A stretch of 63,311 bases of DNA, filler included, from Lenisia limosa (Eukaryota > Protista > Breviatea): the NCBI GenBank assembly GCA_001655205.1. It is 10 parts of 10 records of this genome, joined end to end, with 100 filler letters (N's around TTAATTAATTAA, not from the genome) between each part and the next. Parts side by side here need not be neighbours in the genome. Positions count along the whole stretch, not along the records: positions 24,020 to 36,523 come from LPNZ01007997.1; 9 more parts are not named here. The stretch is one strand, 5' to 3'. A model generated the notes under the pieces. That model was not told the origin of the DNA. It searched no databases and worked only from the letters and a program-made list of their open reading frames with translations. Position numbers and translations under genes: made by a program. This document shows, piece by piece, positions 24,020-36,523 of the stretch (position 1 is its first letter; each line of letters begins with the position of its first letter).

Positions 24020-25403
24020 AAGTGATTCGAACAAGAACAACCCCAAGCTTACTTTCACAGAAGGTGCGCCAATTATCGTGAAAACCAAATATTTTTGAGG
24101 GGTTTTGGGCATCAGACCTACTTCGGTGAAATTACTGCGAGCTAAATTTGGTAGTATTTTTTTCGCGGCTTTGGGGGGTCACCTATATATATATATATAT
24201 GTATATAGTATATGATATAATATAATATCATATATTTACAAGGAGTTGATTTAAAAGTTGGAGATTGTTGACTCCATTTCTTACCAAGTAATTTGTAACT
24301 AATATCACTGTTTAGGTTTGCTTTAGATGAAGGCCCGCCTCTTCGGATCCGGGCTACTCAAGGGCACACGATAGAGGTTTGTTCACCTAATGCCGTTTTA
24401 CAGGTATTCGATCTTCTTGTTTGTTCTTAGTGAGCATACTATTTAAACCCAACAATCCTAGTTCTGGTTTTGACTAGTTTTAAATGTTTAGTTGGAAGAT
24501 CCTGTTCTTGAAAAGCTGACATCTCCACGTCTGTAAGGGAGTTTTGTTGATTTGTTCTTTGAACATCGATACTGTGTGATTTTCAGTTTCTAATCGTGTA
24601 GCGGTTATAATGATCCATGGCACCAAGAGAGCCTCATGGGACATCATAAAAACAGACGGTGGGTGTTTCTTTTGAGATATCTGCAACTTCTAAATATATC
24701 TCATTTCCCTAACTATTAAGGATTAAGGAATATGGGACGAGTGCACATTCATGGCTTGGACTGGATACCGACAGATGAAGACATGAAAATGAGTTGGAGA
24801 GTTTGGGTCATATCATTTTATGCACCCACTATGCACCCCACATTCAATTACTAATCTTCCATCTTAGTTATGCACCCCACATTCAACAATTACTAATCTC
24901 CATCTTAGTTATGCATTTTCCGGAGAAACTCGATTCTTCCACATATGTGTTCTTCAATGATCTGATTTTTTAGAGAGAGCAAGAAGATGCCAAGTTATTA
25001 TTCATTTGGACCCAAGGAAGATGATGGAAGGTCGGTGCGACATGTGAATACTATATGCATGATGGAGCGTTGAATGTCACGTGTTAGTTTCATGTCGTTT
25101 CCTATTTGACCTGTCTGACCTCATTCAAGACGGTTTGGAGATCTTCAAAAGTACCAACAATGTGCTCCTGTGCCCTGGTTTCGATGGTCGCATTCCTCCA
25201 AAGTAGGCGGTAAATTTTGTCGTTAGTATAACATTACTTCAGACACCACTCTCTTAATGTACTTTCAACATCAATTTCACTTCTTATTTCTGCCTCATAT
25301 TTATAAGATCCTTTCAACTATTCCAGCCAGCGATCGATTTTCTCATAATCTCAGGTATTTCATCAAGGCTGTTGACACAAGAGGCAATCCACTTCCTATG
25401 TAA
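24020..25403 (+). CDS. TPT1: tRNA 2'-phosphotransferase (Tpt1/KptA), 5'-truncated
   Basis: LRIRATQGHT, MIHGTKRASWDIIKTDGLRNMGRVHIH, DGLEIFKSTNNVLLCPGFDGRIPPKYF. Confidence 0.9.
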
Positions 25404-25936
25404 TCGTATTGAAGTCAGATTGGCTAGGTTGGTGTTGGCTTCTTTATAGATTTTTTATTCTAATTTTTTGGCTTGGGCTTTATGCTTTTGTTGATTTACA
25501 AGGAAGCCTTTTCAATAAGTATTACGACTGTGGGATTCGATATCCCTCACCAATTCTATTTTTCATCATTTAGATTGATCACAATGGAGTTCGTCTGGAC
25601 ATTGTGTGACATGTACCCTGTTATTCATTTTGTTCAATTTCATAAATACGAGCATTCTGTTAACCTTGGTTCCGTCATCTGTAAAAACAGCAAATGGCTA
25701 ATATTATTTCAATGAATTGAGTCAGGGGGCTATACAATGTCCGTTCTTCGTATATAAAATTAATCATTATTGTTTGGGCTGACAGGGTTGAACAACTAGA
25801 ACAAAGCCAGGGAGAAAAATAAACTTGTTTAGAGTTATACCCCTAGAAGCAAGTGAACAATCAACCATTCCACATTATAACATAAAACCTCTCTTGGAAT
25901 TTGCCCATTTCAATTATTCAACTATTCGGTTTATTT

Positions 25937-28900
25937 TACCACAGGGTGGCCTTGTTGGAACCATCAATGTGATTTTTTGCCTTTTGTAGCAATTTTAATG
26001 TAGTTTGCTGTGAATGATGTTCTCAAATTAAATCCTGGGACCTCATTCAAGGCAATTTGGACGAAAGCTGATTGTAGTGAAAATATGTGACAACTTGCCA
26101 TAAAAGGAAATATTTTTCAAACTGAAGCCTAAAGCCCTCCCGCGGCTTGTTTTAAGGTTTTGTAATAATATAAGGAGATAGTGATGTTATTCCAGTTTTT
26201 CTAACATAGTACACACAGAGTGTTATTGTTGCAGTTTCTGTTTTTAACGCCTATTCGGACCGTCATCCAGTGGGTTTCTGACGCTGTTGACGCCTGCTCT
26301 TCTTATCTTTAGTTTCATGTATATTTACAGGGTGGAAAAGGAGATAAAGGACAGAAATCCTTTCTTTCTTTGGTTTTGTTCGGTTGGTCATATGATGTTT
26401 CTTAAATGATATGGTGTACTCTTGTAAGATAAAATATCCGATTTGTTAATGTTTGTAGTCGAAATGTGCAACGCCTACCTGCAGGAGATTGAAGCCAACG
26501 CTTCCATAATTCCTGATAACCACACATTTAGGTACCCCATACATTCCATTGATATCGTTGCACTATTGGGAAAGTTTTGCTTTCATGCTCTTTATCCATA
26601 ATAACATATGATATCAGATATCTATAATATTAACTGATTTACAGGCATATTGTATGTGTATCAATTGGACCCGAAAGTATGAAATTCATATTTCTTACGT
26701 TTTTAGGATTGCACATATCATCGCCGAAGTAAGCGGGTTGGAATATAATCATGCATCATTACTCATGATAGTGATAGCAATATTCACCAACATATCTGGA
26801 TATTCACATCCCAGCAAAACATCAACACCGGTTCAACCTTTGTGGTATGCTTGAGATTGTTTTTTGAAGAGTGTTTATTTGTAATCGCTTTCCCATTGTC
26901 AGCATTTTACCATGAAGGCCTCAATATCCAGCGCCTTGGAGACGATGGAAGAAAACAACCCCAGTGTTGTGGGATGGGATATTAATCGATGAAATACTAC
27001 AAAATTGTGTAGATGTGTATTCACCCTAGTAGCTTGTGAGTCTTGTGCCAACAATTCAAACAGAAGATCAGCTAAGATTTGTATGTGGACTACTTTTCCA
27101 ACTCACCAAATTTTGTGTCATTGCAAAATATTCTTATAATAAAGACCGTAAACATATAGTATTCGACCTCTTTTTACACTTTAGTTTCTCACACAGAATC
27201 CAAACTTCAGACTTATCATTATCCAGCCAATTACAAATATTTTACGTTTGTTTCACCTCACCAGATCATTCATTTCATGACATTTTAGTGTCACTGTCTG
27301 ATATTGCTTGTGATTTTCCTAATGTTATGTTTCTTATTGGGTAAGTTTGGTAATATACATGATATACAATTGTAAAATGTCCAGACGATATGATACTCAC
27401 CAATCATGGGTCCTTTCTTTAGTTCCAATTAGCCTGTATTTTTGAATGACCTTACAGTGCTTCGATACGCAGTAATTATCCCGTGAATGTGAAAACGTTC
27501 GCAGCCCGAGAGTAGGTTTTGAAACATACTAAGGGAAATAACACCTCATTGACTCGGAGCAGATGACTCACTTACAATTTTAGACTCACGAATCACTTTC
27601 TAAGGGGTTACGCATCTGGACTATTTACCACCAATAAACGAGTTTGTTGAACAACAGAAATGATTCTAGTCTTCTATATACTGTATCTTCGTTGAAAAAC
27701 AAACATGATTAACTTTTAATTATGATTTCAATCACTGCTGTAGATTGGCGTCGTGAGTGGTTCTATTCTAGTCAAAGATTTCAATGCCTGCATGCTTGGT
27801 ATGCTATTAGGGTAGTAAATTTTCACAAATGCTATTTAATATTAACTGGTACAGAGAAATATTTTATAAACACGAAATGAACCACCTTTTATAATAATAT
27901 CAGGTGTTCAACAGGCCTGTCCAGAATGCAAGATATTCTTAATGGACTCCGGGTACTTCAAATCACAGTACAGCTATGTAATACCGCGTCTTCTTTTTGA
28001 ACGCCACGTATGTTCAAATCATTTGAGGAACTGGATACAAGCTCTTGTTTCTTATTATTTTGCTGTTATTTATTTTCTTCAGAAAACAGATCTGATTATC
28101 AGCTTCACTGATGGCGACGGCACATGTATAGGTTTGAAATCAATCCGCTTAAATATATTGATCAAAATGCCTAAATTAACATTTTGAAAGCGAAGGGCCT
28201 CTCTTTTCAATTTTATTTGAAAAATGGTATGTATGCATTTTTTCTTACAAACTCCTTTTATGTTGATTTCCATTTTTAATGGCATTTAATCAGCAGTTTC
28301 AAATATTTCACACAAATTGTAGAAGCTTTGGCGTTAGGAATGAAATGCTCCACTTTTCTTGGTCCACATAGAGCATTGGGAGAGGATATGTTCACCTCAT
28401 TTGTAAGCTGTTTTGTATATTAATTGAGCTTAGATTTTTAATCCTCTTGGCTTTATATTCAATTCAGTTTGTTACTTTTGTAATCTAGACACAATTGGTC
28501 AGACAAAGAATGTTCACAACAACTGAACTGTTTGTTGGAAACTCAATAGCTCTTGAGGAATTCCCACTTCTTACGCCGGATCGTGTAAGCATGACCGTCG
28601 TTTTTTTGTACGTGTTGGGCAAGTCATGGTTCACACTTTGTCTCGAAGGGTCGATGACAATTTAGATAACAGACAGATACAACACTTTGCTGGACTCGGG
28701 GATGTTGAGGCCTTTCTGTTACCCTTATGTTCCTGAGGCTGCAATCGGGGAGTGTTTGAATGAACAAGAAGAAAATCAATTCTATGGAACAAAGTAAGTA
28801 TTGACTATTGACAATTCAATTATCATCTACTGCTTTCATTATCTAGTTACTTTGTTCTCCCATTTGTCAATAACGTTCCGCTCAGGATTGATCGATCCGA

Positions 28901-31900
28901 TGACTATAATAGTATGTAGGTGTCTCATAAGTATATACACTATACATACTATAGTATATATATCATATGATATTATATATTATATTCCTCTTCACATTCA
29001 TATTTTAGTTGTTGCCTTGTATCAAACAAATGATACTAAAGAAACTAAAGAAAGGTAAATTTACTAACTGACAAGATTTGCACAGATTCAACTCAGCCAA
29101 AAGTCAGCTTCTTTCAAAGAGTCTGAGTTTAATCTGAATAATCGTTTCTCTGTGCTACTCCAAACATGTGAAAAGTTCTCTCTTGATCCTGGAATAGACC
29201 TACAGTAAGTACAGGGCAAAACAAGGAATAGGGTGTGACAAATTTCTAACCATATAGAACAACACTTACGTTGCAATCAGGGGTCAACCTTTTGAAATTC
29301 AACGAAACATCAGCGTTATTCTATATCCAACCTGAAGTCCCATTTCCAGTCAGAGTAACTCTAACATTCACCGGTAATATGTAAATATTGAGAAACATGA
29401 TCCAATATATCAAATTAGATACTCTTCCTTTCAGATAATTTCAATTTCATTTACATTTCACATTTACAAGGTATCAAAGTAAATGGAAAGGGACCCTGTC
29501 AGATCGGTGCAAGGTTTTTCAATGAAAAGATCCTTTTGTCGACACTTATCAAAAATATTGTCATACCACCAGAAGAGGTTGATGATTCAGTTTGGTGGAC
29601 ATTTTAACTTAGGACTCTCAAAAATGGATCTGGTTACTTATTCTGTTTTTGATAATAAGTGCAATTCTAGGTAAGGGAAAATGACAGTCTTATTATTTAG
29701 TGCTTATTTTATCAATATATTTCCGACAAACAATACTAGCAAATAAAGCATATCAACTAGCTACAAAGGTAAGATGATATTTTACTGGGATTCAAATGTG
29801 TTTCATTAAGTGTTTGTAATGATGTATTCAGGAAGACGAGAATATTGCTCCATTTTCCACCTATCTAGAGACATCAAAGGTTGACCTTTTGGAATTAAAT
29901 TCGGTAAGCAGAACAGATATTCATAATGCCGCTTATGTAATCTCTTTCAATTTCAAATTTATTGGCAATTCTTTAACTATGCCGACTTTTTAGGACTTAA
30001 AACTGCAAAAACACGCGTCTACATCATTTAATCAGAAGGTTTATTTGAAGACGCTTTCCATCTTAAAGAGTAAGCATCACGTTAGTAACTATTTGTATGT
30101 CCACATTTACGTCCATTCTTGATTAGGCAAATATACTCACTTTGCTAATACACCAACTAGAATTGTCCCGTGACCGCATGATCTACCAACTGGACAACAG
30201 TCAACACACACGTACGGATGTTGTACATATTGACAATCAACTAGCATATTTAGTTCTACCAAAGTTGTTAACATGTTTTATAAGTCCATTTTCTGAATGA
30301 AATGAAGTATGATTAACTCAGATGAAATCCAAGAAGCTGATGTTTTCCTTGATGCGTACGTTGACACTAATATCACAAGAATTGTATGTTTGAAGACAAT
30401 CCCAAAATCTTGTAGAATTCTATCCTTTATGACCTTAGAATTTTTCCGATGAAGACAGCGAATTGCTTTGGTGGAATGTTGTTGTTCATGGTGGTGAAGT
30501 TAAATTACCATTTAAACAAATCACAATCAACCCTGAACAGTATGTAGGAATGAACAACTCTGTAGACGTACATACTGTATATATTCATACTGCGTCTCTA
30601 ACTGTTACAATCTATTTGTGTCCAACTGTCACTTTGTGGTGTTATCAACATAACCATTGCTCAAAACTAACAGGCCGCCACCAAGTCAAGCTTCTCTCAC
30701 AGATGCCGCCAAACTGTAGGTTATTTTCAAAGAGCCCGTGAGATCAAATTTATAAATTTATGAATTATCATAAGGTCCTTTCTCAATCATATTTGACTAA
30801 GCTTCACTTTTTAGGTCAGCCTATGAGATTCAAAAAGAAGTCACAAGGTGCCTTCAGCTTGATTTTGACAGCTCGTCTCTGGAAAAGCTAGATACTTGTA
30901 TGTGAATACTTGAAATAATCTCATAGTATATCATATCTATATATTAGTAGCTATATCATATATATCATACATGTATATCATATACTATTATAATATCATA
31001 ATATGGTTGTTGGTATGACTTTGCTCATTTTTAAGCGGTGCCTCTTGTGCATGTGGTTGCGTTCCATATCACAACACGCTTCCCTGAGCTCTTAAACATA
31101 CTTGACGAGTCTCGATTTATGTTTGTTTTGGAAATACTATCAATATTACATATCGATATGTATACATCACGGAATTTCGCACTTTTCAAACTCTCAATTT
31201 TTTTTGAAATGAAGACAATCCTTTTTCAACATTAGCGCTGTCATTCATCAAATAACACCCAATTTCCCCCTTACATTGTAGGACTTGGTTGTTTACTATT
31301 TGCTCTGCGTATCATGAAATTCCAAGTTTTAATATCAAGCGAGCTACTCAGGTAATCATACAGTCATGCTTTATTTGTAATAATTTTAGACATTCTCCTA
31401 TGGAGCAAATTTGCTATATCGAAGATCAAAATCATTGTAAGGGAAATCATTTCATTTGCTAACAGTGTAGTGAATTTTCTCTTTCTGAGAAATTGGCATT
31501 ATTAGTCACTTTGATAGCACTGGATGTTGGACATATAGGGTTGGTACTCTATGTTCATTTATACAAAATATAGTGTGAAAAACAACTGGTTAGAACATAT
31601 TGCCCATCCCCTGGACCTCTTATACTTCGGACAATCGGTAAGCTATTTGGCTCCATTGGAATATCGTGCAGCCCGCTTTGCTTCTTAATCTTTTCTGTCG
31701 GTTTGTCATTTGATATGTTATTTGAAAAGCTCTACTAACTGTTGCACTATTTTCTGATTATGATATTTAGGTAATGGAAATGTACTCTTGCAGCCAAGCC
31801 TTCGCCCTGATGCGTTATTCAAGCATGGACTTCCTGTCAACTGAAATTGACTTGTTTGTTACACATAAGTAATATCATTTGTAGAATGTCATTTCGTGAG

Positions 31901-32900
31901 CTTTCGGTCAAGCTGTTTCTGGCTTCTGACATGAGACGCCATTTTGAATATGCATCTCTCCTTGGCAATGCGGGTAGGTCTTACAAAAAACTTGGCTATC
32001 ACAGAATCAATACGGCGCATGAACTTGGAATTCCCTTGTAGTATTTGGCAATCCCATAATTTTCTTCAAATTTCCATCAAATTCCATGGGATTCCCATGT
32101 AAAATAGAGGAATTTCCAAGTTTTTCACAAGAAATCCAAGTCGATGACCGTAGTGATTGTGAAAGTACGTGATTGGTTTAGATATCGAGAACTCGGTTGC
32201 CAACTTGCAGCTTATCGTCAAAATGGCTGATATGAGGTTAGCTTTCGTGGTTTTGAAAATTGGGAATGTTTCTGGGGGTCACCCTTTCAGCTGTTTACTG
32301 TTACCTTTTGACATGTCACGAAGATGGTGTATTGAGATGTGCCAAAGTATTCGTGAACAGGTGGGAATATGAAAATAAGAAAATTGCCTGATATGAGATG
32401 AACAAAAAGTCCTGTTTGGAACTATTTACTATTCTTAGGACATCATTGCCGAGCATTTCAATAAGGAACATGTAAGTTCATCTCATGAATGTGGTGTTTA
32501 CCTTATAGCCCAAGAAGAATGGCAGTCAGAACTTAATCCAACGAATGCTTGAGTATGGTTCTGTTTTTTTATCACCCCTCCCTTCTGACACGATTATAGT
32601 TCTAGTTTGTTTCAAGAACATAGAACATGACCATGAACGCAAACCAATCTCATAATTTAGGTATATTTACATACCGTATGCATTGGCCATGGAAGAGAGG
32701 ATGTTTCCAAACTTGGGAGCAAAGAAGAATGGTAGGGTTAGGCATCTCTCTCAAACTGTGTATTTCATTTCATATTTTGTCATTAACTCTTTGTTGCGTT
32801 TTACCAATTGACTCAGAACAACAGTTATATTAATTACTCAGGTGAAATAAACCGCGAGCTTGTTCAAGCAATTTCTTCGTCACAATGTTGTATTGGTTAA
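25937..32900 (+). CDS. Single-pass receptor: BMP-family ligand-binding ectodomain, TM helix, degenerate class I cyclic-nucleotide phosphodiesterase domain
   Basis: In-frame exon joins: DHSFHDILVSLSDIACDFPNVMFLIG; GYASGLFTTNKR|IGVVSGSILVKDFNACML|GVQQACPECKIFLMDSG (BMP-like); TM WIWLLILFLIISAIL|VLILSIYF (29613-29768); PDE-like ICSAYHEIPSFNIKRATQ, EKLALLVTLIALDVGHIG|VKNNWL, VMEMYSCSQAFALM, LFLASDMRRH, LIVKMADM|SCLLLPFDMSRRW. 5' end unresolved. Confidence 0.8.
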
Positions 32901-33050
32901 TGGGTGTACTAGTTAGTTATTATGTTTGGCCCATCCCAAAAAAAGTGGATGGATTATAATTAGTATTATTGACTCAACACAAGTGGATTTATTGCATCGT
33001 CGCCCCCAAATGACATAATAGACCTAATGTACATTACAACCATCCACACT

Positions 33051-36523
<3,473 letters not shown>

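Follow-up and report, generated by a model that had tools for sequence, protein, structure and literature searches.

A highly divergent PDE2-type gene of Lenisia limosa encodes a candidate pseudo-phosphodiesterase

We examined a 63,311-nucleotide (nt) stretch of DNA (the window) from the breviate protist Lenisia limosa (assembly GCA_001655205.1), in which 10 parts of 10 records are joined by 100-nt fillers. The part from 24020 to 36523 (record LPNZ01007997.1) is AT-rich eukaryotic DNA of 32 to 48% GC and contains three genes. One of them, a multi-exon gene on the plus strand that extends at least from 28489 to 32900, is related to the class I cyclic-nucleotide phosphodiesterases (PDEs), and its conceptual product has lost the general-acid histidine and two of the four zinc ligands. 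We put the odds slightly above even, at a probability of about 0.55, that the locus is a single-copy, protein-coding gene of PDE2 type, highly derived, and that its product is a pseudoenzyme.

To place the spliced protein, we compared it with proteins containing the PF00233 domain, which were fetched by a 79-residue bait resembling a vertebrate PDE2A-type core and then by real hits and a JGI contig. The spliced protein matched database protein P0098 at 34 bits in phmmer (conditional E, 2.5e-12). A profile of 20 PF00233 fragments matched it at 25.7 bits (E, 3e-10), and a profile of 34 named PDE2 proteins matched its catalytic part only (E, 1.4e-08). The Smith-Waterman z was 12.5, with 0 of 500 shuffles scoring as high, and collinearity with PDE2-type proteins extended over about 200 residues. 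The PF00233 similarity covers only the N-terminal two-thirds of the catalytic domain, and these alignments show that this part of a class I PDE catalytic fold is still encoded. Searches of Pfam, PDB, and a 1.84-billion representative library with single exons gave no PDE match; the exons are too short and too divergent for Pfam or PDB matches. Therefore, the domain is detectable only once spliced.

The best-scoring relatives are proteins named by their sources as cGMP-dependent 3',5'-cyclic phosphodiesterases. The catalytic core scored 34.5 bits against PDE2-type and 21.3 bits against PDE5/6/11-type fragments. PDE2-type PDEs are the closest family, although a very distant one: the protein matches the family majority residue at just 23% of positions, and in a MAFFT alignment it retains only 18 of the 46 columns that are invariant in the family. 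The protein carries the family strings LLY, G.NN, LxxLY, SVME, LA(S/T)D, and xxD..(S)...W. However, it differs from PDE2-type proteins in that the EFFxQGD motif and about 16 following residues are missing, no GAF domain is detectable upstream of the core, and the modeled C terminus is a CaaX-like CCIG. We know of no CaaX-like end in PDE2.

The catalytic motifs could be located by alignment to PF00233-containing proteins. The family ppYHNWmHa pairs with IPSFNIKRA, ClCHDlDHRGtnNsf with LIALDVGHIGVKNNW, GSVMErHH with QSVMEMYS, and ILATDL with FLASDM. In PDEs, the YHN histidine acts as general acid, and the metal ligands are the second His of HNxxH, both residues of HD, and the xxD Asp (PMC12839185; PMC7720076). 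In every alignment, PYHNWxH has become PSFNIKR, such that Phe replaces the YHN histidine and Arg replaces the second His of HNxxH. CHDLDHRG has become ALDVGHIG, with Leu in place of the first His and with the Asp and second His of HDxxH kept. In ERHH, now EMYS, the Glu is kept and both His are lost (Tyr and Ser). The Asp of LATD is kept in LASD. The CD motif reads AD (MAD), and its Asp is also kept, with weak local support. This last string belongs to KMADMS, which sits at the family's xCDLS within significant alignments, and the Asp and following Trp in the alignment of that exon are invariant family columns. The general-acid and metal-holding positions are now occupied by Phe, Arg, Leu, Asp, and Asp. 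The Lenisia protein is unlike its relatives in this respect, as 0 of 86 PDE2-like database proteins that span the motifs lack them.

A sequence-only reading of this DNA had listed PSFNIKRA, ALDVGHIG, EMYS, LASD, and MAD and had concluded that the catalytic and metal-binding histidines were lost. All five strings are present at the coordinates given, the alignments support their homologous positions, and the loss extends to the general-acid His, the His ligands of HNxxH and HD, and the ExHH His. The same reading described the HDxxHPG-type signature as altered. This is true of its first His, but the Asp and second His are kept, as the string itself makes visible. It also described LATD and CAD as kept. 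LASD does align, and MAD lies within significant alignments, but the stretch from MAD to the C terminus has no significant similarity alone.

The sequence-only reading had also raised splicing that restores HN..H and HD motifs as a possible refutation. However, no alternative exon with HN..H, HD..H, or E.HH was found in the six frames of 24020 to 36523, and alternative splicing within the locus therefore cannot restore the catalytic site. Loss of the general-acid His together with two of four Zn ligands makes hydrolysis of cAMP or cGMP very unlikely, and loss of catalysis is well supported by the alignments. Without the binuclear metal center, there would be no bridging hydroxide to attack the cyclic phosphate, and neither cAMP nor cGMP would be hydrolyzed. 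The ExHH histidines organize the water shell of the second metal.

It is doubtful that the old pocket still binds nucleotides. In the MAFFT alignment, Ile stands in the column of the purine-binding Gln that is invariant in the family, with a Gln one position to either side, and Met stands in that of the clamp Phe. This region lacks significant similarity, which makes its register uncertain. Because the purine-clamping Gln and Phe are out of register and the C-terminal pocket helices are unrecognizable, the old active site probably does not bind a cyclic nucleotide. The suggestion that the protein is an allosteric cyclic-nucleotide binder found no support, given the out-of-register Gln with Ile in its place and the failure to detect a GAF domain upstream.

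We built the exon model on GT..AG borders, each of which was set by frame continuity and collinearity with PDEs. The full model has 23 exons and 22 introns, all GT..AG, and 609 codons without an in-frame stop, and the other two frames of the same model contain 27 and 51 stops. Ciliate-style recoding was considered and rejected, because none of the triplets TAA, TAG, and TGA occurs in frame in the 609 codons of the model. The GC content is 39.6% in exons versus 33.0% in introns, and it is 46, 34, and 39% at the three codon positions, which looks coding. Read depth over the gene is uniform at 36.6 (run X1), indicating that the locus is single copy. An exact-sequence lookup found one match, the ENA metagenome-assembly contig L124, which is identical across the gene.

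Homology supports only the core from 30815 to 32360, which is spliced from GT..AG exons on the plus strand. The recognizable PDE domain begins in the exon at 30815 to 30897 (..LQLDFDSSSLEKLDT), which is in frame and aligns to the N-terminal helices of the family profile; the significant phmmer and hidden Markov model alignments start in the exon at 31036 to 31120 (SVPLVHVVAFHITTRFPELLNILDESRFM). The sequence-only reading had placed the domain at 31282 to 32360, with about 10 introns. The domain starts further upstream, at about 30815 to 30852, and the range given holds eight exons and seven introns. The first of the eight (31282 to 31351) carries PSFNIKRA at 31322 to 31345, aligned as the PYHNxxHA equivalent. 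The next (31390 to 31436; TFSYGANLLYRRSKS) is collinear with the family and is flanked by introns of 38 and 34 nt; it is the sole choice of frame and borders that links both adjacent exons free of stops. The exon at 31471 to 31539 aligns with the family and contains the start of the xHDxxHxG equivalent, because ALDVGHIG is split by an intron and runs from 31517 to 31574. It is followed by the exon at 31574 to 31637 (VKNNWLEHIAHPLDLLYFGQS), which aligns as the GTNNSFQ..LAxLYSSEGS equivalent and is preceded by a 34-nt intron with a weak GTTGGT donor.

SVMEMYS is also split (31635 to 31788), and its VMEMYS portion, the aligned VMERHH equivalent, lies in the exon at 31771 to 31868. Next to it is a 16-nt segment at 31869 to 31884 (gtaatatcatttgtag) whose removal is required for the frame. 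The aligned exon at 31885 to 31973 contains FLASDM at 31916 to 31933, equivalent to ILATDL. The exon at 32182 to 32236 carries KMADM(S), the presumed xCDLS equivalent with its Asp Zn ligand; it lies inside the significant alignments and is weak alone, and KMADMS as a whole spans 32220 to 32291. The last core exon (32291 to 32360; CLLLPFDMSRRWCIEMCQSIREQ) ends where the range of the sequence-only reading ended and aligns to database protein P0151.

Outside the core, the exons are tentative. Nine upstream exons, at 28489 to 28584, 28666 to 28793, 29076 to 29204, 29258 to 29373, 29435 to 29559, 29591 to 29670, 30308 to 30383, 30439 to 30539, and 30674 to 30715, were drawn from open frames and GT..AG borders. 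PDE2 carries GAF-A and GAF-B domains N-terminal to its catalytic domain, and the nine exons (28489 to 30715) occupy the place of GAF-B and the linker. However, no GAF domain was found in them by Pfam searches exon by exon or by the profile of 34 PDE2 proteins, and the Smith-Waterman z of the region against GAF-B-bearing PDE2 was 0.5. Searches for GAF or C-terminal exons by tblastn and by per-segment profiles gave noise only.

Four C-terminal exons (32439 to 32471, 32509 to 32552, 32661 to 32731, and 32842 to 32900) follow from frame continuity and GT..AG borders only, and they end in ..SSSQCCIG and the stop codon TAA. The terminal Cys-Cys-Ile-Gly and stop (32886 to 32900) form a CaaX-like box, in which Gly is unusual as X. 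We take this end to resemble the CCIQ and CCIL prenylation boxes of rod PDE6 alpha and beta. The likeness to PDE6, a prenylated GAF-PDE, thus lies in a C-terminal Cys-Cys-Ile-X box, and prenylation of the Lenisia protein is putative. The differences are the Gly at X and a core that scores better with PDE2-type than with PDE5/6/11-type fragments.

Several features argue that the gene encodes a pseudoenzyme. The alignments and the hydrophobic pattern are those of an enzyme fold that has been kept while its catalytic residues were lost. A hydrophobic residue is kept in 77% of the family's hydrophobic columns, versus a figure of 24% for polar columns (permutation p < 2e-4). Such a pattern is that of a fold that persists as its sequence drifts, although the way the alignment is made is itself biased toward matches of this kind. 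The homologous exons contain no stop and all of their borders are GT..AG, an argument that the sequence has long been evolving as a protein that is translated and folds. We estimate the chance of finding no stop in these approximately 243 codons at about 2e-8, taking about 7% stops per random codon at this composition. In addition, exons of about 40 residues from the adjacent MCM gene score 40 to 67 bits in Pfam, indicating that the lineage as a whole is not hyperdivergent.

Other observations weigh against the pseudoenzyme. The splice sites were picked for frame continuity, so the absence of stops is partly circular outside the homologous exons. The last 97 residues have no significant PDE similarity (Smith-Waterman z of at most 1, with no other frame better), and neither the last third of the domain nor the presumed GAF region can be recognized in alignments. 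RNA run X2 has zero cover at 27200 to 33021 and covers the MCM gene from 33022, which is weak evidence from the only library, a small polyA one. Neither the 1.84-billion representative library nor metagenome contigs yielded an orthologue or a self-protein. Exact 8-mer peptide patterns retrieved no orthologue from the metagenome contigs, and the 120 matches to a degenerate DNA pattern for ALDVGHIG were due to chance, with no related sequence among them. Six of the 22 modeled introns are shorter than 40 nt (16 to 38 nt), versus 58 to 293 nt, by eye, for ten introns in the adjacent Tpt1 and MCM genes. Finally, the best-aligned form of the protein needs the 16-nt intron at 31869 to 31884, and if that segment is retained, translation stops at residue 471.

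These points make a pseudogene the most serious alternative, although we regard it as distinctly less probable than the pseudoenzyme. In this scenario, a once-functional PDE2-type gene, possibly one that was already noncatalytic, has lost its expression or its correct splicing and is decaying. The missing RNA cover beside a covered MCM gene, the stops brought by the 16-nt segment unless it is removed, the cluster of 31- to 38-nt "introns," and a C-terminal third and expected GAF region that cannot be recognized in any frame would all fit, as would the insertion of a high-copy, mobile-element-like repeat in one intron. However, neutral divergence to 23% identity should have produced many stops and frameshifts, and none is forced in the homologous codons, where the hydrophobic pattern is strongly kept. 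A check for a disabling lesion likewise found none that is forced, although the best-aligned form requires the 16-nt intron. At that site, splice alternatives of 49 or 55 nt keep the frame and delete 11 to 13 residues; the family profiles give them 23.3 and 22.4 bits, versus 24.8 for the 16-nt form. The segment is either a real ultrashort intron, a differently spliced site, or a disabling lesion. The short introns have good donors (GTAAGT, GTAAGG, and GTAATC), and these and the AG acceptors sit at precisely the points that collinearity with the family demands; ultrashort introns also occur in some animals (PMC13644364). For these reasons, we take the 34- to 38-nt introns as genuine. An ultrashort-intron genome of the myxozoan or dicyemid type, considered as a source of the short introns, is a poor fit given the lengths of the ten neighboring introns.

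The sequence-only reading had argued from an intact frame for a selected pseudoenzyme rather than decay. The frame is indeed free of stops across the homologous exons, but only if the 16 nt are removed. The kept hydrophobic core and the lack of stops speak for selection, and the absent RNA cover and orthologues, the 16-nt intron, and the unrecognizable C-terminal third speak against it. Selection, as opposed to decay, is a plausible but unproven reading of the gene.

Two further explanations concern the extent of the gene and the chemistry of its product. The outer gene model may be wrong, which we consider improbable. The product would then be shorter or differently spliced, for example ending in ..SIREQVGI at 32372 or starting near 30800, and the dead core would sit in an architecture other than a GAF-PDE. 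This would agree with the limits of the homology (30815 to 32360), with outer exons that depend solely on open frames and GT..AG borders, and with the donor at 32361, where read-through meets a stop after four codons (open reading frame 32169 to 32372). On the other hand, a continuous frame over 23 exons to a stop 120 nt before the 3' end of the neighboring gene is unlikely by chance, and YIYIPYA and EINRELV can be seen by eye at the family HIVIPVY and NREHW positions. Far less probable still is an active phosphodiesterase or other hydrolase with migrated or noncanonical catalytic residues. Three acidic residues of the metal site (the Asp of HD, LASD, and MAD) and the second His of HDxxH are retained, and passages in the pseudoenzyme literature note that catalytic residues can migrate (PMC10211241). 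However, two Zn ligands of the four have become Arg and Leu, and the general acid has become Phe; the ExHH motif is lost, as are the substrate-clamp Gln and Phe; and no compensating His-rich motif was seen in the aligned region.

The 208-nt intron ahead of the KMADM(S) exon holds the repeat mentioned above, a palindromic high-copy element of about 155 nt at 31979 to 32132, with a word depth of 1377 versus about 36 (run X1). It has nested inverted repeats, many loose ends, and an opposite-strand joint, and it looks like a miniature inverted-repeat transposable element. A low-complexity tract of the TATATCATAT type occurs at three noncoding places (24185 to 24240, 28925 to 29000, and 30920 to 31000), and one X1 contig links 30991 to 27354 via four extra letters. 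A match to P0001, a repetitive protein of 1033 residues (E, 1.9e-08), was rejected as spurious, because it came from the translated 54-nt intron at 32237 to 32290 (..VLKIGNVSGGHPFS..) and not from the gene. It is a warning for queries that combine exon and intron.

The PDE-like gene has two neighbors. A Tpt1/KptA-type RNA 2'-phosphotransferase gene lies on the plus strand at about 24300 to 25210, with three collinear weak matches to PF01885. Its introns are estimated at about 112, 58, 62, and 293 nt, and the last contains a tandem duplication of an approximately 45-nt unit (24830 to 24920). Downstream is a convergent MCM gene on the minus strand (33022 to 36523; 9000 to 14400 of contig L124), whose exons score 40 to 67 bits against PF00493 and whose motifs are presumably those of MCM7. 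Its 3' end and the stop codon of the PDE-like gene are separated by only some 120 nt, its introns are about 86 to 257 nt by eye, and it is the only part of the examined stretch covered by the RNA run. The runs of N at 33774 to 36009 differ in length from the sequence they replace (for example, 195 N versus 80 bases in contig L124), which displaces all coordinates past 33774 from those of the real contig. Over 9.7 kb, the window and the ENA contig differ only at 33308, where a poly-C tract has 11 versus 12 C.

If the product is a pseudoenzyme, it would most likely have a noncatalytic role exerted through its surface, either as a scaffold or by dimerizing with or regulating an active GAF-PDE paralogue, and the CaaX-like CCIG end may hold it at a membrane. 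Pseudoenzymes have been proposed as regulators, scaffolds, or partners of active paralogues in passages of the literature on them (PMC5106787; PMC10211241; PMC3149277; 10.1101/2021.11.05.467447). A natural, selectively maintained PDE2-derived pseudo-phosphodiesterase that neither binds metal nor hydrolyzes, and that acts as a membrane-tethered regulator or dimer partner in cyclic-nucleotide signaling through its CaaX-like end, is a tentative proposal to which we give a little less than even odds.

To our knowledge, the catalytic histidines of PDEs are treated as invariant. We found no natural catalytically dead class I PDE in the literature searched, and the pseudoenzyme reviews examined did not mention cyclic-nucleotide PDEs. 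One Toxoplasma study only speculates that some Toxoplasma PDEs may be inactive. If the pseudoenzyme reading is true, this would be, as far as the searched literature reaches, the first described dead member of class I. A retained member without catalytic histidines would place PDEs among the enzyme families that have given rise to regulatory pseudoenzymes, and it would offer a natural "metal-free" PDE scaffold for the study of dimer-based or scaffold functions. If the gene is instead a pseudogene, it would represent ordinary gene loss in a compact genome. The known signaling pseudoenzymes differ from the Lenisia protein in that their expression, conservation, and function have been shown. What it would share with pseudokinases, pseudophosphatases, the iRhom pseudoproteases, and degenerate bacterial EAL and HD-GYP domains is a fold that has been kept while its catalytic residues have been lost.

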